DNA of 64,000 bases, taken from assembly GCA_964057225.1 (NCBI GenBank), contig OZ059894.1, positions 19,096,001 through 19,160,000 of the forward strand. Reading direction: 5' to 3'. A model generated the notes under the pieces. That model was not told the origin of the DNA and searched no databases. It saw only the letters and a program-made list of their open reading frames with translations. Of the stretch, positions 1 through 63,700 are shown piece after piece (positions within the stretch are counted from its first letter, which is position 1; each line of letters begins with the position of its first letter). Made by a program: the position numbers and the translations under genes. The DNA comes from Auanema rhodensis. Its lineage: Eukaryota; Animalia; Nematoda.

Positions 1-164
1 CGAGGATATAAGTGTGAACTTATATCAGTTGATATCTGGGTGCATTTTTAAGCTAGCGCAAATATGATAACACAGATCGACGCAGCTTAAAAATCCGCAT
101 CGAATGCACTATACTACATTGAGAAACGCTTAATACAAAAATTAGTTATGATCGTTTGAAAAAT
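1..164 (+). repeat. Partial 351-bp satellite monomer, left flank of the retrotransposon
   Basis: Matches monomer positions 1-164 of the downstream array (e.g. 5481-5644). The monomer resumes at 4592 (GATCCATTAG). Confidence 0.99.
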
Positions 165-199
165 TATTCTATTTTACTAGTCTACGACGTTAAATAAGA
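165..199 (-). repeat. 3'-terminal extension (rE-like) outside the ITR
   Basis: 35 nt present only at this end. Its reverse complement is found in the ICR. Confidence 0.9.
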
Positions 200-346
200 A
201 TTATATTTATTCGAAATGCTTTATTTCGTAATAGGTCCTCACATAAAACAAACAAAAAAAAATTCAAATTATCTCTCAGGTTCCCTTTCCCACGTTTCTT
301 TGGGCGGGAAATAGTGAGAGTAAGCGATCGTCCTTATTCATTTCAG
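200..346 (-). repeat. 3' inverted terminal repeat (147 bp)
   Basis: Reverse complement of 4445-4591 with a single mismatch (T312 opposite G4479). Confidence 0.97.
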
Positions 347-592
347 GTGTCCAAAAAAGGAAGAATAGAAAGGCAGCATAACAATAACAAAATAAAAGAA
401 CAATAGTAACAGAAGGAAAGGAAAGGCTGCGGATAGCAGGCAGCATGCTAACCTATCTCTTGCGGTCGTAGTTGGTGCGTTGTGCAGGCTTGAATCTGGA
501 AAGTTATGATAAAGACATCGAAAGTGGGCGAGCTCGAGTGGAAGTCCTCAGGTTGGTTAGCGGGAGCGCAGTAGGGGTGGAGGTGGGAGATA

Positions 593-665
593 TTCGAATA
601 AATATAATTCTTATTTAACGTCGTAGACTAGTAAAATAGAATAATTATATTTATTCGAAATGCTT
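593..665 (-). repeat. Internal complementary region (ICR)
   Basis: 593-646 is the exact reverse complement of 162-215, and 644-665 is the exact reverse complement of 4570-4591. The two halves overlap on a single ATT (644-646). The ICR lies 2 bp past the YR stop codon. Confidence 0.96.
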
Positions 666-667
666 CT

Positions 668-1924
668 TCAAAAAAGAATCTTGGACTGGAACGAGGTTCT
701 TCGCTCATAGTGGGTGAAGAAGGTTTTTTCTGAAGCCCAGTTAGCCGCCTTGAGGATGTCGCCTATAGGTAGACCTTGCGCTAGTGCCTTCGAGGTCACA
801 GCCGAGCGTGTTGAGTGAGCTTTGAAGGTAGTGGGTATGCCCGCGCTGTGCAGGGTCTTTCTAATCCAACCAGAAATGGTGGTGGGTTCCACTGCTGCTC
901 CATTCTTTCTGTTAAGAAAGAGGCATCTTGTTCGGCGGAGTTCCATGGTTCGAGATAGGTATTCATTTATGCAGTTAATAGGGCACAGGTTATTGCGTGT
1001 GGGGAAGTTCTCGAACTTCGCTTCATGCGGGGGTCCCTTAGATCTGTTTTTATTGCGTTTATTTATGAAGAAAGTTAACCCTTCTGCGTCGATACGCATG
1101 TGATCTAGGGAGAAAACGGCCAATTCGCTCACCCTCTTTGGAGAGCATAGGGCCAATAGAGTGGCTAGCTTGTGAGTGAGAGACTCTAGGCTGAGTTGGA
1201 CGTTGGGGCCCAGCCTATCAAGGAAGTCCAAGACTTCGGAGGGGTCCCAGGTGTCTACGTACCTAGCCCCTGAAGGCTTCTCTCTGAACAAACCCCTCAT
1301 GAGGCGGAGGAGCAGCACGTTCTCCTTTAGGGAGGGGGAGACCCCTAGGTGATCGGCCAATGCGGATATCGCTACCTTGTGTATGCGTACTGTGGAGAAG
1401 GCCTTAGTTTGAGCGAGAAATGATAGATAGTTAGCAACCGTTACTGGGTTGGGAGTAAAAGGTATCTTCTGCTTATTGCAGTAAGCTTTCCAGTTCTTGA
1501 GAGCACAGCCGTACTGTTTGCGTGTTCCTGGGGCCCAGGATTCGTTTAGGAGTCTCTTAGTCTCTGCTGTTACTCCCTCAAAGGAGTTTGTTAAATCTTC
1601 CACGCTGCTAATTGGAAATTCGGCGACTGCAGGAGAGGATGTGGGTTTCCTTCCCGGTCGGACAGCAGGTTCGGGTGTTGGAGCAGCAAGGGAGGCTCCT
1701 TGGATCTCTCTTGGAGTAGGGGAAACCACATTTGGCTCTTCCAGAATGGTGCTATCACTATAGCCGACCTCTGGGAGCTGGCGAGCTTTCCTAAGGTCTT
1801 GTGCAGGAGGTGGAAAGGTGGAAATACGTAAAGTAATCCGTCTGGCAGCTGCTGCCAATTGAACAAGAGTGCGTTCACTCCTAATGCGGCGCAATCTGGA
1901 AAGAAGGAGTAGAAAAGGGCGCAT
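668..1924 (-). CDS. DIRS-type tyrosine recombinase (YR) with N-terminal DNA-binding region
   Basis: The ORF track starts at TTG 1936; the first ATG is at 1924 and the TGA stop is at 668-670. Motifs include SWAPGTRKQY..W..YC, catalytic R in SPKRVSEL, HSTR (HxxR), ANW and the nucleophile Tyr in FFTHY. It overlaps the 3' end of pol in another frame. The true start is uncertain. Confidence 0.93.
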   Translation of the reverse strand: MRPFLLLLSRLRRIRSERTLVQLAAAARRITLRISTFPPPAQDLRKARQLPEVGYSDSTILEEPNVVSPTPREIQGASLAAPTPEPAVRPGRKPTSSPAVAEFPISSVEDLTNSFEGVTAETKRLLNESWAPGTRKQYGCALKNWKAYCNKQKIPFTPNPVTVANYLSFLAQTKAFSTVRIHKVAISALADHLGVSPSLKENVLLLRLMRGLFREKPSGARYVDTWDPSEVLDFLDRLGPNVQLSLESLTHKLATLLALCSPKRVSELAVFSLDHMRIDAEGLTFFINKRNKNRSKGPPHEAKFENFPTRNNLCPINCINEYLSRTMELRRTRCLFLNRKNGAAVEPTTISGWIRKTLHSAGIPTTFKAHSTRSAVTSKALAQGLPIGDILKAANWASEKTFFTHYERRTSFQSKILF

Positions 1925-4413
1925 TTGGCGTTCCAAGTGGACGCGAACAGGTCTATTTTGGGTTCACCCCATTTGGAAAATATTGATCTAGTGATCTCCG
2001 GATGGAGCGACCAGTCTTCCTTCAAAATTCTGCCGCGGGACAGGCAGTCGGCAGCCGTATTGATTTTTCCCGCTATATGCGATGCTCTGATTCTGAGCTT
2101 ACGGGTATCGGCAAATTGCCATAACTCCAGTGCTAATCTAGTGCCCTTCTGGGATTGACTCCCGCCCCTACGGTTGATGTAGGCAATGGCAGAAGTATTA
2201 TCTAAGAGTAAGAGAACGTCGAGATTGAGCCAGGTCTTGCCGAACTCTGTTAGACCCTTCGTTGCTGCAATCAGCTCCAGCCAGTTTATATGGTAGTTAA
2301 AGCGTTCTGCCTCGGACCAAGATCCTGACAAGGTATTACCTTCCCACGAAGCGCCAAAACCCTCCAGGGAGGCATCTGAGGTAATGGAGTATCGGGGAGA
2401 AAAGGGCGTGAGCGAGGATACTTCTGATAGACGGGGAACGTCCTTGGTTCGAAGATCCTCCAGGATCTTTCTTAACGATCGATCTATTCTTAGAATTTGA
2501 GGGAAGGCATTGGGATCATTTACGTTCGTAATTCCTTTAAGCCGTAGGTGGAAGTGCAGTTCACGGTTTCTGAAGGAGAGGTTAGGTGCTACCAGAGACG
2601 CAAAGTTCAATTTTCCCATTAGCGAGGCTAATGCTCTTATACTCAGCTCTGATTGAGCTGTTAAACGAGTGAGAGACTCGAGCAAACCCTTTTTCTTGGC
2701 CTTTGGGAGAGACCAGCTCATCGATCTTGAATTCAGCTGAATACCAAGAAATTCTATTTCTTGTGTGGGTATCATAATTGATTTATCCCAGTTTATCGTA
2801 AAACCCGCGCGATCAAAAGTAATTAGAATCTCTGTTAGTTGGGACCTGAGACAATCAGGATCCTCCGAGATGAACAGCCAGTCATCTAAGTAGTTGATGA
2901 GATTGATCCCTTTACCCCGAAAATGGGATACCAGAACACGCATTAGCTTATGGAATATGTAGGGGGCTGAGCTCAGCCCAAAAGGGAGTGCTCTAAATAG
3001 GAAAGTGCGCCCCTCTGCTGTGAAAGCTAGGAAGGGTTGATCCTTCGGATCGATACTAATCGCGTGGTAGGCTGAATGAAAATCGATTTTGATCATGAAA
3101 TTATCCTGTCGTAGGAGCGACGGGATGTCCCGAAGGGATTCTAGCTTGAACTTGGGTACTCGGAGAAAAGTGTTCAGGCGCTTTAAATTGAGGATGAAAC
3201 GGGCCGTGCCGTCCGCCTTGGGAACGTGGAAGGTCGGGGATATGAAAACCTTCTCCCTCGGGGCGGCCTCTCGAATGGCGCCAGTGTACAGCAGTTCCTG
3301 GATATCCGACCTGGGTTGCTCCGGCAAGGTAGAGCAGATGGGTGGCAGCGATAAAGGTGGAGGTGTGCGGGCAAAGGGGAGACTATAGCCCTGAACCGCG
3401 TTAAGGATCTCCTTGTCCCTGGAGATGGACGCCCAAAAGGTTGTGGTGGAGGATACCCGGCATGCGAAAGGAAAAGTGACTAACCTCTTTCTCTGGTTAG
3501 TAGCGAACGTTGAGAAGGTAGCTTGTCTCTTGGGGGCTGAGCGTGGCCGTTGGGCATCATTCCTGCGAGGAGTTGTTCTGGAGCTTCTGGACAGTTCGGA
3601 GTACGACGATAGTTCTGCTCTGAGCTTCTTGCCAAACAGTTCGGGTGCCGAATCCTCTGGAGCGTTGTCTACCGGGATCACGGTTCCATAGATGGGGGAC
3701 TTCTTGAAGCTAGGCATGGCTCGGTAGGGTTGAGAGATCTTCATCTTGGTTAGAGCACACTCTCGCAAGTTGGTGCAGTGGGTCTTGATGTTAGCGCTGA
3801 GGAAGCGCTCCACTATGGCAAAGTATGCCTCCTGTTTTGTTGACAGACGAGAGTCCCTATCTATCCTGCCCAGCTTGCGAATTATCTTGATGTTAGAAAG
3901 AACGATTAGATCATTCTCGTATGCCGTGCGTATCTCAGCTTCGGACAGACGGATAGTGGGCTTGATGTTATTGTCCACGTGAGTAGTGTAGCGGTCGTCC
4001 AAGACCGGTAGTCGAGCGAACGGTGAGTCGATATTTGGGAGTTCCGAGATGAGCTCAGCTCTCTCGGTCGAGGACATGAGCAGTCCCGAGGCGAGTCTCT
4101 CGAAATCAGCAGTCTCGGAGGAAGATAGGCGAACGAGTGGCCTAGATCTGGGTCCGTGTGCCTCCGGTGGCATGGGGACCGTTTCGTCTTCGTCGTCCTC
4201 TGAATAGAGGTCCTCTTTCTCGGGCTGGTCCGAGTTCGGAGGTGGTGGGGAAGGAGCTTCTACCCTTCTCCTCTCGACGTGTTGACGGTCGGTGGAGATA
4301 GACGTTGGAGATGTTGAGCGTGACGATCTCGAAGAAGAAGAGCTGAAGGCTCGTACTCTTCTCGGAGAAGTTTCAGTCGGGGCTTGTCCCTGACGAGTGT
4401 GGCTTGGAGCCAT
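1591..4413 (-). CDS. Gag-like + reverse transcriptase + RNase H + Dam-like methyltransferase polyprotein (940 aa)
   Basis: ATG at 4413, TAA at 1591. RT motifs: KIDFHSAY, LPFGLSSAP, YLDD (2881-2892), EFLG. DIRS RNase H motifs: TSDAS..GFGA, HINWLEL, DNTSA, NTAADCLSR. C-terminal MT motifs: IDLFAS, YVFPPF (1813-1830), IAPFW..Q.WFP.L. The N-terminal ~290 aa (Ser/Arg/Pro-rich, then helical) are assigned as Gag by position only. Confidence 0.95.
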   Translation of the reverse strand: MAPSHTRQGQAPTETSPRRVRAFSSSSSRSSRSTSPTSISTDRQHVERRRVEAPSPPPPNSDQPEKEDLYSEDDEDETVPMPPEAHGPRSRPLVRLSSSETADFERLASGLLMSSTERAELISELPNIDSPFARLPVLDDRYTTHVDNNIKPTIRLSEAEIRTAYENDLIVLSNIKIIRKLGRIDRDSRLSTKQEAYFAIVERFLSANIKTHCTNLRECALTKMKISQPYRAMPSFKKSPIYGTVIPVDNAPEDSAPELFGKKLRAELSSYSELSRSSRTTPRRNDAQRPRSAPKRQATFSTFATNQRKRLVTFPFACRVSSTTTFWASISRDKEILNAVQGYSLPFARTPPPLSLPPICSTLPEQPRSDIQELLYTGAIREAAPREKVFISPTFHVPKADGTARFILNLKRLNTFLRVPKFKLESLRDIPSLLRQDNFMIKIDFHSAYHAISIDPKDQPFLAFTAEGRTFLFRALPFGLSSAPYIFHKLMRVLVSHFRGKGINLINYLDDWLFISEDPDCLRSQLTEILITFDRAGFTINWDKSIMIPTQEIEFLGIQLNSRSMSWSLPKAKKKGLLESLTRLTAQSELSIRALASLMGKLNFASLVAPNLSFRNRELHFHLRLKGITNVNDPNAFPQILRIDRSLRKILEDLRTKDVPRLSEVSSLTPFSPRYSITSDASLEGFGASWEGNTLSGSWSEAERFNYHINWLELIAATKGLTEFGKTWLNLDVLLLLDNTSAIAYINRRGGSQSQKGTRLALELWQFADTRKLRIRASHIAGKINTAADCLSRGRILKEDWSLHPEITRSIFSKWGEPKIDLFASTWNAKCALFYSFFPDCAALGVNALLFNWQQLPDGLLYVFPPFHLLHKTLGKLASSQRSAIVIAPFWKSQMWFPLLQERSKEPPLLLQHPNLLSDREGNPHPLLQSPNFQLAAWKI

Positions 4414-4444
4414 GGACGATCGTATGTGAGGCTCAACGAAAAAA

Positions 4445-4591
4445 CTGAAATGAATAAGGACGATCGCTTACTCTCACTGTTTCCCGCCCAAAGAAACGTG
4501 GGAAAGGGAACCTGAGAGATAATTTGAATTTTTTTTTGTTTGTTTTATGTGAGGACCTATTACGAAATAAAGCATTTCGAATAAATATAAT
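4445..4591 (-). repeat. 5' inverted terminal repeat (147 bp), probable promoter region
   Basis: Reverse complement of 200-346. It is separated from the ATG at 4413 by a 31-nt leader. The promoter role is inferred from DIRS biology. Confidence 0.96.
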
Positions 4592-4596
4592 GATCC

Positions 4597-7500
4597 ATTA
4601 GTGTATGTTGAGTTTCCATGTACACTCAACATTGCTTCCAAAAACATTTTGACAAAAATTTTTTCGAAAAATTTCAAAATAATTTAGCAAAAAGTAGATG
4701 TTTTTAGATTCCATTTTTCAAGGCAAAGACGATGGACAATGTTATTCAACGAAAAAATTAATTCTTCAGGGTGAAAATCGAGGATATAAGTGTGAACATA
4801 TATCAGTTGATATCTCGGTGCATTTTTAAGCTAGCGCAAATCTGATAACACAGATCGACGCAGCTTAAAAATCCGCATCGAATGCACTATACTACATTGA
4901 GAAACGCTTAATACAAAAATTAGTTATGATCGTTTGAAAAATGATCCATTAGTGTATGTTGAGTTTCCATGTACACTCAACATTGCTTCCAAAAACATTT
5001 TGACAAAAATTTTTTCGAAAACTTTCAAAATAATTTAGCAAAAAGTAGATGTTTTTAGATTTCTTTTTTCAAGGCAAAGACGATGGACAATGTTATTCAA
5101 CGAAAAAATTAATTCTTCAGGGTGAAAATCGAGGATATAAGTGTGAACTTATATCAGTTGATATCTCGGTGCATTTTTAAGCTAGCGCAAATCTGATAAC
5201 ACAGATCGACGCAGCTTAAAAATCCGCATCGAATGCACTATACTACATTGAGAAACGCTCAATACAAAAATTAGTTATGATCGTTTGAAAAATGATGCAT
5301 TAGTGTATGTTGAGTTTCCATGTACACTCAACATTGCTTCCAAAAACATTTTGACAAAAATTTTTTCGAAAAATTTCAAAATAATTTAGCAAAAAGTAGA
5401 TGTTTTTAGATTCCTTTTTTCAAGGCAAAGACGATGGACAATGTTATTCAACGAAAAAATTAATTCTTCAGGGTGAAAATCGAGGATATAAGTGTGAACT
5501 TATATCAGTTGATATCTGGGTGCATTTTTAAGCTAGCGCAAATCTGATAACACAGATCGACGCAGCTTAAAAATCCGCATCGAATGCACTATACTACATT
5601 GAGAAACGCTTAATACAAAAATTAGTTATGATCGTTTGAAAAATGATGCATTAGTGTATGTTGAGTTTCCATGTACACTCAACATTGCTTCCAAAAACAT
5701 TTTGACAAACATTTTTTCAAAAAATTTCAAAATAAATTAGCAAAAAGTAGATGTTTTTAGATTCCTTTTTTCAAGGCAAAGACGATGGACAATGTTATTC
5801 AACGAAAAAATTAATTCTTCAGGGTGAAAATCGAGGATATAAGTGTGAACTTATATCAGTTGCTATCTCGGTGCATTTTTAAGCTAGCGCAAATATGATA
5901 ACACAGATCGACGCAGCTTAAAAATCCGCATCGAATGCACTATACTACATTGAGAAACGCTTAATACAAAAATTAGTTATGATCGTTTGAAAAATGATGC
6001 ATTAGTGTATGTTGAGTTTCCATGTACACTCAACATTGCTTCCAAAAACATTTTGACAAAAATTTTTTCGAAAAATTTCAAAATAATTTAGCAAAAAGTA
6101 GATGTTTTTAGATTCCATTTTTCAAGGCAAAGACGATGGACAATGTTATTCAACGAAAAAATTAATTCTTCAGGGTGAAAATCGAGGATATAAGTGTGAA
6201 CATATATCAGTTGATATCTCGGTGCATTTTTAAGCTAGCGCAAATCTGATAACACAGATCGACGCAGCTTAAAAATCCGCATCGAATGCACTATACTACA
6301 TTGAGAAACGCTTAATACAAAAATTAGTTATGATCGTTTGAAAAATGATCCATTAGTGTATGTTGAGTTTCCATGTACACTCAACATTGCTTCCAAAAAC
6401 ATTTTGACAAAAATTTTTTCGAAAAATTTCAAAATAATTTAGCAAAAAGTAAATGTTTTTAGATTCCTTTTTTCAAGGCAAAGACGATGGACAATGTTAT
6501 TCAACGAAAAAATTGATTCTTCAGGGTGAAAATCGAGGATATAAGTGTGAACTTATATCAGTTGATATCTGGGTGCATTTTTAAGCTAGCGCAAATCTGA
6601 TAACACAGATCGACGCAGCTTAAAATTCCGCATCGAATGCACTATACTACATTGAGAAACGCTTAATACAAAAATTAGTTATGATCGTTTGAAAAATGAT
6701 GCATTAGTGTATGTTGAGTTTCCATGTACACTCAACATTGCTTCCAAAAACATTTTGACAAAAATTTTTTCGAAAAATTTCAAAATAATTTAGCAAAAAG
6801 TAAATGTTTTTAGATTCCTTTTTTCAAGGCAAAGACGATGGACAATGTTATTCAACGAAAAAATTGATTCTTCAGGGTGAAAATCGAGGATATAAGTGTG
6901 AACTTATATCAGTTGATATCTGGGTGCATTTTTAAGCTAGCGCAAATCTGATAACACAGATCGACGCAGCTTAAAAATCCGCATCGAATGCACTATACTA
7001 CATTGAGAAACGCTTAATACAAAAATTAGTTATGATCGTTTGAAAAATGATGCATTAGTGTATGTTGAGTTTCCATGTACACTCAACATTGCTTCCAAAA
7101 ACATTTTGACAAAAATTTTTTCGAAAAATTTCAAAATAATTTAGCAAAAAGTAGATGTTTTTAGATTCCTTTTTTCAAGGCAAAGACGATGGACAATGTT
7201 ATTCAACGAAAAAATTAATTCTTCAGGGTGAAAATCGAGGATATAAGTGTGAACTTATATCAGTTGATATCTGGGTGCATTTTTAAGCTAGCGCAAATAT
7301 GATAACACAGATCGACGCAGCTTAAAAATCCGCATCGAATGCACTATACTACATTGAGAAACGCTTAATACAAAAATTAGTTATGATCGTTTGAAAAATG
7401 ATCCATTAGTGTATGTTGAGTTTCCATGTACACTCAACATTGCTTCCAAAAACATTTTGACAAAAATTTTTTCGAAAAATTTCAAAATAATTTAGCAAAA

Positions 7501-56100: not shown

Positions 56101-57715
56101 TTCGAAATGTTTCGAAAAAATTTTTGTCAAAATGTTTTTGGAAGCAATGTTGAGTGTACATGGAAACTCAACATACACTAATGCATCATTTTTCAAACGA
56201 TCATAACTAATTTTTGTATTAAGCGTTTCTCAATGTAGTATAGTGCATTCGATGCGGATTTTTAAGCTGCGTCGATCTGTGTTATCAGATTTGCGCTAGC
56301 TTAAAAATGCACCGAGATATCAACTGATATAAGTTCACACTTATATCCTCGATTTTCACCCTGAAGAATTAATTTTTTCGTTGAATAACATTGTCCATCG
56401 TCTTTGCCTTGAAAAAAGGAATCTAAAAACATCTGTTTTTTCCTAATTTATTTTGAAATGTTTCGAAAAAATTTTTGTCAAAATGTTTTTGGAAGCAATG
56501 TTGAGTGTACATGGAAACTCAACATACACTAATGCATCATTTTTCAAACGATCATAACTAATTTTTGTATTAAGCGTTTCTCAATGTAGTATAGTGCATT
56601 CGATGCGGATTTGTAAGCTGCGTCGATCTGTGTTATCAGATTTGCGCTAGCTTAAAAATGCACCGAGATATCAACTGATATAAGTTCACACTTATATCCT
56701 CGATTTTCACCCTGAAGAATTAATTTTTTCGTTGAATAACATTGTCCATCGTCTTTGCCTTACAAAAAGGAATCTAAAAACATCTACTTTTTGCTAATTT
56801 ATTTTGAAATTTTTCGAAAAAATTTTTGTCAAAATGTTTTTGGAAGCAATGTTGAGTGTACATGGAAACTCAACATACACTAATGCATCATTTTTCAAAC
56901 GATCATAACTAATTTTTGTATTGAGCGTTTCTCAATGTAGTATAGTGCATTCGATGCGGATTTTTAAGCTGCGTCGATCTGTGTTATCAGATTTGCGCTA
57001 GCTTAAAAATGCACCGAGATAGCAACTGATATAAGTTCACACTTATATCCTCGATTTTCACCCTGAAGAATTAATTTTTTCGTTGAATAACATTGTCCAT
57101 CGTCTTTGCCTTACAAAAAGGAATCTAAAAACATCTACTTTTTGCTAATTTATTTTGAAATTTTTCGAAAAAATTTTTGTCAAAATGTTTTTGGAAGCAA
57201 TGTTGAGTGTACATGGAAACTCAACATACACTAATGCATCATTTTTCAAACGATCATAACTAATTTTTGTATTAAGCGTTTCTCAATGTAGTATAGTGCA
57301 TTCGATGCGGATTTTTAAGCTGCGTCGATCTGTGTTATCAGATTTGCGCTAGCTTAAAAATGCACCGAGATAGCAACTGATATAAGTTCACACTTATATC
57401 CTCGATTTTCACCCTGAAGAATTAATTTTTTCGTTGAATAACATTGTCCATCGTCTTTGCCTTACAAAAAGGAATCTAAAAACATCTACTTTTTGCTAAT
57501 TTATTTTGAAATTTTTCGAAAAAATTTTTGTCAAAATGTTTTTGGAAGCAATGTTGAGTGTACATGGAAACTCAACATACACTAATGCATCATTTTTCAA
57601 ACGATCATAACTAATTTTTGTATTGAGCGTTTCTCAATGTAGTATAGTGCATTCGATGCGGAGTTTTAAGCTGCGTCGATCTGTGTTATCAGATTTGCGC
57701 TAGCTTAAAAATGCA
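53164..57715 (-). repeat. Inverted satellite block, 4,552 bp (13 monomers minus 11 bp)
   Basis: The sequence switches to the reverse complement at ...CAAGGC-T-ACTGATATAAG (53162/53164) and back at ...AAAAATGCA/CAAAAATTAG (57714-57715). Confidence 0.98.
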
Positions 57716-60700: not shown

Positions 60701-63700
60701 ATTCAACGAAAAAATTAATTCTTCAGGGTGAAAATCGAGGATATAAGTGTGAACTTATATCAGTTGATATCTCGGTGCATTTTTAAGCTAGCGCAAATCT
60801 GATAACACAGATCGCCGCAGCTTAAAAATCCGCATCGAATGCACTATACTACATTGAGAAACGCTTAATACAAAAATTAGTTATGATCGTTTGAAAAATG
60901 ATCCATTAGTGTATGTTGAGTTTCCATGTACACTCAACATTGCTTCCAAAAACATTTTGACAAAAATTTTTTCGAAAAATTTCAAAATAATTTAGCAAAA
61001 AGTAAATGTTTTTAGATTCCTTTTTTCAAGGCAAAGACGATGGACAAAGTTATTCAACGAAAAAATTGATTCTTCAGGGTGAAAATCGAGGATATAAGTG
61101 TGAACTTATATCAGTTGATATCTGGGTGCATTTTTAAGCTAGCGCAAATCTGATAACACAGATCGACGCAGCAATTCTTCAGGGTGAAAATCGAGGATAT
61201 AAGTGTGAACTTATATCAGTTGATATCTCGGTGCATTTTTAAGCTAGCGCAAATCTGATAACACAGATCGACGCAGCTTAAAAATCCGCATCAAATGCAC
61301 TATACTACATTGAGAAACGCTTAATACAAAAATTAGTTATGATCGTTTGAAAAATGATGCATTAGTGTATGTTGAGTTTCCATGTACACTCAACATTGCT
61401 TCCAAAAACATTTTGACAAAAATTTTTTCGAAAAATTTCAAAATAATTTAGCAAAAAGTAGATGTTTTTAGATTCCAATTTTAAGGTAAAGACGATGGAC
61501 AATGTTATTCAACGAAAAAATTAATTCTTCAGGGTGAAAATCGAGGATATAAGTGTGAACTTATATCAGTTGATATCTCGGTGCATTTTTAAGCTAGCGC
61601 AAATCTGATAACACAGATCGACGCAGCTTAAAAATCCGCATCGAATGCACTATACTACATTGAGAAACGCTTAATACAAAAATTAGTTATGATCGTTTGA
61701 AAAATGATCCATTAGTGTATGTTGAGTTTCCATGTACACTCAACATTGCTTCCAAAAACATTTTGACAAAAATTTTTTCGAAAAATTTCAAAATAAATTA
61801 GCAAAAAGTAGATGTTTTTAGATTGCTTTTTTCAAGGCAATAACGATGGACAATGTTATTGAATGAAAAAATTAATTCTTCAGGGTGAAAATCGAGGATA
61901 TAAGTGTGAACTTATATCAGTTGATATCTCGGTGCATTTTTAAGCTAGCGCAAATCTGATAACACAGATCGACGCAGCTTAAAAATCCGCATCGAATGCA
62001 CTATACTACATTAAGAAACGCTTAATACAAAAATTAGTTATGATCGTTTGAAAAATGATGCATTAGTGTATGTTGAGTTTCCATGTACACTCAACATTGC
62101 TTCCAAAAACATTTTGACAAAAGTTTTTTCGAAAAATTTCAGAATAATTTAGCAAAAAGTAGATGTTTTTAGATTCCTTTTTTCAAGGCAAAGACGATGG
62201 ACAATGTTATTCAACGAAAAAATTAATTCTTCAGGGTGAAAATCGAGGATATAAGTGTGAACTTATATCAGTTGATATCTCGGTGCATTTTTAAGCTAGC
62301 GCAAATCTGATAACACAGATCGACGCAGCTTAAAAATCCGCATCGAATGCACTATACTACATTGAGAAACGCTTAATACAAAAATTAGTTATGATCGTTT
62401 GAAAAATGATGCATTAGTGTATGTTGAGTTTCCATGTACACTCAACATTGCTTCCAAAAACATTTTGACAAAAATTTTTTCGAAAAATTTCAAAATAAAT
62501 TAGCAAAAAGTAGATGTTTTTAGATTCCTTTTTTCAAGACAAAGACGATGGACAATGTTATTCAACGAAAAAATTAATTCTTCAGGGTGAAAATCGAGGA
62601 TATAAGTGTGAACTTATATCAGTTGATATCTCGGTGCATTTTTAAGCTAGCGCAAATCTGATAACACAGATCGACGCAGCTTAAAAATCCGCATCGAATG
62701 CACTATACTACATTGAGAAACGCTTAATAAAAAATTAGTTATGATCGTTTGAAAAATGATCCATTAGTGTATGTTGAGTTTCCATGTACACTCAACATTG
62801 CTTCCAAAAACATTTTGAAAAAAATTTTTTCGAAAAATTTCAAAATAATTTAGCAAAAAGTAGATGTTTTTAGATTCCTTTTTTCAAGGCAAAAACGATG
62901 GACAATGTTATTCAACGAAAAAATTAATTCTTCAGGGTGAAAATCGAGGATATAAGTGTGAACTTATATCAGTTGATATCTCGGTGCATTTTTAAGCTAG
63001 CGCAAATCTGATAACACAGATCGACGCAGCTTACAAATCCGCATCGAATGCACTATACTACATTGAGAAACGCTTAATACAGAAATTAGTTATGATCGTT
63101 TGAAAAATGATGCATTAGTGTATGTTGAGTTTCCATGTACACTCAACATTGCTTCCAAAAACATTTTGACAAAAATTTTTTCGAAAAATTTCAAAATAAA
63201 TTAGCAAAAAGTAGATGTTTTTAGATTTCTTTTTTCAAGACAAAGACGATGGACAATGTTATTCAACGAAAAAATTAATTCTTCAGGGTGAAAATCGAGG
63301 ATATAAGTGTGAACTTATATCAGTTGATATCTCGGTGCATTTTTAAGCTAGCGCAAATCTGATAACACAGATCGACGCAGCTTAAAAATCCGCATCGAAT
63401 GCACTATACTACATTGAGAAACGCTTAATACAAAAATTAGTTATGATCGTTTGAAAAATGATCCATTAGTGTATGTTGAGTTTCCATGTACACTCAACAT
63501 TGCTTCCAAAAACATTTTGAAAAAAATTTTTTCGAAAAATTTCAAAATAATTTAGCAAAAAGTAGATGTTTTTAGATTCCTTTTTTCAAGGCAAAAATCG
63601 ATGGACAATGTTATTCAACGAAAAAATTAATTCTTCAGGGTGAAAATCGAGGATATAAGTGTGAACTTATATCAGTTGATATCTCGGTGCATTTTTAAGC

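Follow-up and report, generated by a model that had tools for sequence, protein, structure and literature searches.

We analyzed a window of 64,000 nucleotides (nt) from the nematode Auanema rhodensis (contig OZ059894.1 of assembly GCA_964057225.1; C1:19096001-19160000); the window is this whole stretch, and coordinates given without a scaffold name are positions in it. Positions 162 to 4591 form a complete DIRS1-like retrotransposon, with its coding strand on minus, which interrupts an array of a 351-bp satellite. The features of the window are the following.

1-161, plus strand: left flank, a 351-bp satellite monomer interrupted at monomer position 1-3 (site A); 1-167 matches 4779-4945 at 98%.
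162-164, no strand: left AAT core trinucleotide, the element's 3'-terminal ATT in sense orientation.
162-199, minus strand: 38-nt terminal extension beyond the inverted terminal repeat (ITR), duplicated in the internal complementary region (ICR); 162-215 and 593-646 are 100% complementary.
200-346, minus strand: ITR arm (right ITR in sense orientation), 147 nt, 99%.
593-665, minus strand: ICR, whose reverse complement reads right end, AAT, left end.
668-1936, minus strand: open reading frame (ORF) 2, tyrosine recombinase (YR), with the catalytic domain at about 701-1189.
1591-4413, minus strand: ORF1, 940 amino acids (aa), with reverse transcriptase (RT) at 2734-3222, RNase H at about 2038-2391 and a methyltransferase-like region at about 1594-2001.
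1896-3484, minus strand: candidate intron of 1589 nt (GTTAGT...TTTCCAG), a prediction.
4445-4591, minus strand: ITR arm (left ITR in sense orientation), pairing with 200-346.
4589-4591, no strand: right AAT core trinucleotide.
4592-64000, plus strand: 351-bp satellite array.

The two ITR arms are complementary at 146 of their 147 nt; the sole mismatch is a private T at position 312, and the arms are perfect in sister copies. Besides the stretch that pairs with 162-215, the ICR contains a second one (644-665) perfectly complementary to 4570-4591. It is thus the exact reverse complement of 4570-4591 and 162-215 joined through a single AAT, and so it spells the predicted circle junction of this family (family 1), ...AAATAT-AAT-TATTC.... 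The AAT is present at both ends of the element and in the ICR junction, and there is no target-site duplication. The flanks, ...GTTTGAAA[AAT] on one side and [AAT]GATCC... on the other, fuse to one whole monomer with a single AAT, the same arrangement as in the uninterrupted neighboring monomer at 4929-4950, and the empty site retains one AAT at all 12 copies of family 1 found in the genome. DIRS1-like elements are known to start and end with NTT, most commonly ATT (PMC3266345), and their 3-bp junction recombines with an identical genomic trinucleotide without duplicating the target (PMC3266345, PMC7192593).

Both frames are open in the window copy, and ORF1 and ORF2 (422 aa) overlap by 346 nt in different frames. 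The RT was recognized by Pfam (RVT_1, E 1.1e-21, ORF1 aa 398-560), and the DD pair at ORF1 aa 510-511 is read here as its YxDD box. The RNase H region had no match in the Pfam scan; an alignment of 31 relatives shows no variation at its residues D680, E713, D738 and D789, and the AlphaFold model of ORF1 residues 560-940 (predicted local distance difference test score 92.7) resembles RNase H1/HI folds, with template modeling scores of 0.55-0.74 normalized to the target. The methyltransferase-like region matches Pfam Dam with an E value of 0.0022, short of the curated cut-off, while its modeled fold matches the PCIF1/CAPAM adenosine methyltransferase (E 4e-6); its DLFA and FPPF motifs are conserved among relatives, and several protein relatives have PF05869. 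ORF2 contains a Phage_integrase domain (PF00589, E 4.5e-8, above the cut-off) with the YR catalytic motifs KRVSEL (R, aa 268), HSTRS (HxxR, aa 374-377) and THY (Y, aa 410). The N-terminal ~390 aa of ORF1 matched no Pfam family and are presumed to be Gag by their position, in frame with the RT. The candidate intron, the only in-frame pair at the thresholds used, is a prediction only, which would link aa 1-309 of Gag, in phase, with the recombinase frame; no counterpart was found in families 2 and 3 (see below) at the same stringency.

The best protein relatives are just 39% identical and are no help in placing the family. The element fits the published description of the DIRS1-like retrotransposons (order DIRS). 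Like Dictyostelium DIRS-1 and the metazoan members of this group (PMC3266345), it has ITRs with one extended end, an ICR spelling the junction, an RT, an RNase H, a methyltransferase-like domain and a YR in overlapping frames, a terminal ATT and no target duplication. Unlike them, it has the presumed Gag in frame with the RT in a single 940-aa ORF, and it integrates recurrently at defined nucleotides of one satellite. The original prediction, made from the letters of the window, had listed two open ORFs with recognizable RT, RNase H and YR motifs, ITRs matching at 146/147, an ICR perfectly complementary to both ends and an interrupted monomer that rejoins without loss. All of this was borne out, the coding part by the Pfam matches, the invariant residues and the fold model, and the rest by the comparisons of 200-346 with 4445-4591, of 593-646 and 644-665 with 162-215 and 4570-4591, and of the rejoined flanks with the single AAT of 4929-4950.

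From 4589 to its end, the window is an array of the satellite, in which the 351-bp units match at 97-98%. In the genome, one 26-mer taken from the monomer was counted 121,588 times (its control, 0 times), which puts the satellite at ~42.7 Mb, a 23.6% share of the 180.9-Mb assembly. Both ends of the autosomes carry it in multi-megabase blocks, and on C1, a scaffold of 24.7 Mb, it is found at 0.9-5.5 Mb and 18.85-20.0 Mb. The germline assembly of Auanema rhodense (180.9 Mb, seven chromosome scaffolds) has been described in a recent preprint (bioRxiv 10.64898/2026.08.27.747507), according to which ~61% of the germline genome is lost from somatic cells, starting at the ~12-cell stage. The eliminated multi-megabase blocks at both autosome ends consist of two autosome-specific repeats, and selection is said to survey the eliminated regions only weakly, so that repeats and genes derived from transposons build up in them (same preprint, in which DIRS goes unmentioned). 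The fluorescence in situ hybridization probe used there for the first repeat, AT-1, has 153,090 matches with a 176-bp period in the genome analyzed here, which agrees with the Auanema rhodense germline assembly. These matches and the nematode spliced leader SL1 (see below) led us to discard a suspected origin in the flour beetle Tribolium (TcDirs1, TCAST satellite). Since the 351-bp repeat is located at both ends of C1, and considering also its abundance, it is most likely the second terminal repeat, AT-2. A literature search with 20-mers of the satellite and with "351 bp satellite" returned nothing relevant.

We searched the genome with the whole element and scored all 36 candidates. Family 1 comprises 12 copies (11 full-length and one split), each at least 98.6% identical to the window copy. 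All 12 are embedded in the 351-bp satellite (0 of the 36 scored candidates were outside it), and all lie toward one or the other scaffold end, at positions compatible with the terminal blocks. Any two full-length copies are 0-60 nt apart over 4430 nt. Both long frames are kept in 9 of the 11, and two independent copies show no difference at all. ORF1 is frameshifted in L004, and the recombinase frame of L007 loses its C-terminal part, breaking off ahead of the HxxR and Y motifs. Two large insertions interrupt the C3 copy. Both are the same 16.9-kb element, present in opposite orientations (C3:4559842-4576738 and C3:4577624-4594597), each with a 6-bp target duplication; the element has terminal inverted repeats of ~640 bp, codes for a B-type DNA polymerase of the protein-primed kind and for a chromodomain-bearing rve integrase, and is Maverick/Polinton-like. 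In public DNA sequencing runs, the family-1 element was found in assembled contigs under three organism labels, with a few shared variants. Among the contigs of public runs, the only form in which they were searched, no RNA run with the element was found, and the joints listed from them are uninterrupted monomers, with no circle junction among those listed.

The number of insertion events behind these copies was assessed by comparing the elements together with 1.5 kb of flank on each side. Two pairs of neighboring copies served as controls. In L002/L004, 5.8 kb apart, the right flanks differ at 1 of 1400 nt and the elements at 4 of 4430; in L005/L006, 8.3 kb apart, the left flanks differ at 0 of 1500 nt and the elements at none. 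True duplication therefore leaves the flanks as alike as the element. The other pairs behave differently. The elements of L001, L002 and L003 are 0-1 nt apart over 4430 nt, while their flanks are 20-34 nt apart per 1500 nt, as is usual between monomers, and the first flank differences appear 4, 38, 86 and 97 nt away from the junction. L007, on C4, has an element 13-14 nt from those of L001-L003 and flanks that are equally diverged. Over all nonduplicate copies, the flanks are 1.3-2.3% apart and the elements 0-0.3%. Diverged flanks around near-identical elements indicate independent insertions: on this flank test, family 1 represents 8 of them conservatively, or 10 if three copies on C6 are counted separately.

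The same comparison bears on the proposal that a few original insertions were spread by segmental duplication, unequal exchange or copying through flank homology, with gene conversion keeping the elements identical. Local duplications are real (L002/L004, L005/L006 and a fragment of the related family 2 at C3:4.97 Mb), the C6 copies have a common AAG core and partly similar flanks, and copying through flank homology would yield the same site and orientation. However, true duplicates have flanks as similar as their elements and the other pairs do not; on either side, beginning as close as 4 nt to the element, the flanks of these pairs differ as much as monomers normally do, which leaves no co-converted tract, and they carry variants of the local array, such as the GATCC of the window, which is also present in the next monomer. 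Moreover, four monomer positions, two orientations and five chromosomes would each need a new integration, and insertions of family 2 in unique DNA show true transposition following the same AAT rule. We consider spread at the DNA level unlikely as the general explanation.

The majority sequence of the monomer (such a sequence was built for the monomer and not for the element) offers 27 AAT site-and-orientation options. Family 1 uses four of them, as follows.

Site A: monomer position 1-3, plus orientation, gtttgaaaAAT/gatgc; L001, L002/L004, L003 and L007; 4 events.
Site B: position 70, minus orientation, ttcgaaaaAAT/ttttgtc; L005/L006 and L009-L011; 2-4 events.
Site C: position 43, minus orientation, ggaagcAAT/gttgag; L008; 1 event.
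Site D: position 282, plus orientation, cttaaaAAT/ccgcatcg; the C3 copy; 1 event.

Clumping of 8 events on so few sites has a p of about 0.001 by simulation. The presence of all 8 events in the satellite has a p of 1e-5 against the satellite's share of the genome and of 5e-4 against its share of the eliminated DNA. Of the five satellite sites that families 1 and 2 use, four lie in an AAAAAT context, versus 8 of the 27 options. AAAAAT and its complement together amount to 21 per kb in the 351-bp satellite and to ~5 per kb in AT-1 and in nonsatellite DNA (47 kb). The original prediction had proposed an intact, young DIRS1-like element whose family colonizes this satellite, possibly at the monomer position interrupted at 162-164. 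The identical independent copies and the nine copies with both frames agree with the first part, and the 12 of 12 copies inside the satellite with the second. The position also recurs, with at least four independent family-1 events and further ones of the sister family; family 1 uses three other positions as well. Two patterns suggested at the time as contrary outcomes were looked for: the copies are not dispersed in proportion to the satellite's share, and they do not all go back to one insertion, since their flanks are 20-100 times more different than the elements, to within 4 nt of the junction.

Family 2 is 65-75% identical to family 1 at the nucleotide level and has its own ICR, with the junction ...AAATAT-AAT-AGAATT.... 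Its loci (L031 and L033-L041) lie at C3:4.41-4.95 Mb, C1:3.14 Mb, C4:13.62-13.65 Mb, and C6:4.71-4.73 and 15.89 Mb. On chromosome 3 it occupies site A in the same orientation as family 1, through at least three events, and by the same flank test the flanks there are 1.1-2.4% apart versus 0.1-0.5% for the elements. Site A is therefore a hotspot for two families. On chromosome 1 there is one insertion at monomer position 330 (acaaaAAT/tagtt). Four further insertions, on chromosomes 4 and 6, lie in nonsatellite DNA, with AAT (3 of 4) or ATT (1 of 4) as the trinucleotide at the AGAATT end and AAC or AAA on the opposite side. This suggests that one of the two cores would be supplied by the element and its counterpart by the target, with no need for a match at the third base, a reading that would also account for the AAG common to the three C6 copies of family 1. 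Family 3 is a single copy in the middle of chromosome 1 (C1:13195578-13199988; L042:2664-7100), ~71% identical to family 2, which sits at an AAT of a different satellite, of ~173/345 bp.

Fragments of family 2 were also observed. A 221-bp fragment is repeated at least 10 times at C3:4967960-4996508, mostly with 1473- or 1824-bp spacing, and it looks as if this fragment and satellite monomers were amplified jointly as a composite repeat. A 3' fragment (query 3113-4411) lies at C1:17200385-17201622, below the lowest right-arm satellite match seen (18.85 Mb).

The four nonsatellite sites of family 2 mean that DIRS copies can persist outside the 351-bp repeat, which bears on another reading, in which the recombinase has no preference beyond AAT, insertions are random and they survive only in gene-free, eliminated satellite, so that retention rather than targeting would produce the pattern. 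It gains from the description of the eliminated regions as weakly surveilled and rich in repeats and transposon-derived genes (bioRxiv 10.64898/2026.08.27.747507), and the satellite makes up 24% of the genome with a similar share of the AAT sites. Besides the persistence of family 2, it is opposed by three facts: a single one of the 27 AAT options was hit independently four or more times, in one orientation and in two families; the 27-Mb AT-1 satellite, which belongs to the same eliminated blocks and has equal AAT density, holds no copies; and independent copies are identical, which leaves little time for selection. Retention by itself thus seems improbable. Both retention bias and spread at the DNA level contribute, but neither accounts for elements that are nearly identical and yet sit in unrelated flanks at one nucleotide.

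Rhabditid nematodes are holocentric. The original prediction had also put forward a candidate centromere-targeting element, and this part was not supported, because the host is holocentric and because the repeat lies at both chromosome ends. In such an element, CenH3 chromatin would guide integration, a mechanism that has been argued for retrotransposons resident at centromeres. Dictyostelium DIRS-1 does cluster at centromeres (PMC7192593), and YR elements are mentioned in chordate centromere arrays (10.64898/2026.09.17.752431). Here, however, the satellite forms several multi-megabase blocks at both chromosome ends that are reported to be eliminated from the soma, and the recurrence of insertions at single nucleotides points to recognition of sequence rather than chromatin, making centromere targeting very improbable. 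A better frame would be that of a retrotransposon specialized on germline-restricted satellite DNA.

We therefore favor, with a probability of roughly 0.7, the view that the window element is a copy of a recently active family of DIRS1-like YR retrotransposons that integrates selectively into the 351-bp satellite. Following the standard DIRS model, the transcript would be reverse-transcribed, and the ICR would bring both ends of the cDNA together to give a circle with the junction ...AAATAT-AAT-TATTC.... The recombinase of the element would then swap strands between the AAT of the circle and a chromosomal AAT, leaving an element with an AAT at each end and no duplicated target. With ~121,600 monomers and a fourfold richness in AAAAAT relative to the other DNA sampled, even a modest preference of the recombinase would send most integrations into the satellite. 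Such a context preference goes a long way to account for the confinement, but not for the choice of A and B over unused AAAAAT sites. Considering this confinement together with the elimination of the terminal blocks reported in the preprint, we infer that the family lives only in germline-restricted DNA.

Several points weigh against selective integration. With a preference for AAAAAT only, ~57% of the sites would be in the satellite, and 8 of 8 events would then have a p of about 0.01. Four other AAAAAT sites of the monomer, at positions 69, 82, 168 and 234, are unused, and a comparison of the used sites revealed no recognition motif beyond AAT and the upstream A-run. An att-like similarity to the flanks of the circle junction was also considered and rejected, since in a ranking of the 27 options the used sites were not at the top for either family 1 or family 2. 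The three C6 copies share the AAG left core and have partly similar flanks, and may go back to a single insertion. In gene-free DNA eliminated from the soma, retention bias must contribute, and it is not quantitatively separable from insertion bias. The identity of the repeat with AT-2 and the elimination of the window are deduced from position and abundance rather than from the tables of the preprint. Finally, the case is built on outcomes in an assembly, from which we infer integration, transcription and circles. A more far-reaching version of selective integration, in which the recombinase would have evolved to recognize the sequence of the 351-bp satellite, the element would propagate only in DNA discarded by the soma and its fragments would seed composite satellite repeats, is put forward tentatively, as possible but somewhat short of probable.

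To our knowledge, the integration specificity of a DIRS recombinase has never been determined experimentally, and the literature consists of the 3-bp rule and a remark on DIRS-1 inserting into DIRS-1. The remark concerns insertion into other DIRS-1 copies at centromeres. The survey of DIRS1-like elements, in the text that was searched, is silent on satellites and describes no target specificity past the trinucleotide (PMC3266345). The independent insertions at a fixed position of a repeated target resemble those of R1 and R2 in 28S ribosomal DNA, Dictyostelium TRE and yeast Ty near tRNA genes, cases for which damage-tolerant repeated targets have been described as a "safe haven" (PMC13269885). 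Unlike these systems, the family described here relies on a YR acting on a circle and not on target-primed reverse transcription or a tethered DDE integrase, and its target is a noncoding satellite with several positions instead of one. As in the colonization of centromere satellites by ATHILA and CRM in plants and by long interspersed nuclear elements in other taxa (10.64898/2026.09.17.752431), a young family is confined to a homogeneous, megabase-scale satellite, but the element is of another class, the host is holocentric and the satellite is terminal and, according to the elimination preprint, germline-restricted.

Transposons are known from other DNA that undergoes programmed elimination, such as the internal eliminated sequences of ciliates and the Tas retroelements, which are partly eliminated in Ascaris. 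Our case is similar in that mobile elements lie in DNA removed from somatic nuclei; it differs in the selectivity for the eliminated repeat at the level of single nucleotides, beyond mere accumulation. Nothing found here ties the element to the elimination machinery. These copies provide a natural data set in which two related families have integrated again and again at single nucleotides of the 351-bp monomer, and concrete substrates for recombination assays result from it, namely, site A versus unused AAT sites. They also link the choice of niche by a transposon with programmed DNA elimination in a nematode that can be cultured in the laboratory, and make it possible to test whether eliminated DNA is a passive dump for repeats or is actively aimed at by mobile elements. 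If the more far-reaching version of selective integration is correct, this would be a retrotransposon whose whole niche is DNA destined for programmed elimination, and which would be invisible to the soma.

Apart from the element, the array in the window has two irregularities. The segment 53164-57715 is inverted, and 61069-61277 holds a 105-bp internal duplication. The flipped stretch measures 4.55 kb, and its joints connect monomer position 136 to 219 and 231 to 322; the breakpoints (53163 and 57710-57715) were considered as possible recombinase products and rejected, since the joins are not AAT to AAT. Elsewhere in the genome, the exact 22-mer of the nematode spliced leader SL1 has 1,267 occurrences, most of them in tandem units of 252 bp (C3:6741531-6768501 and beyond).

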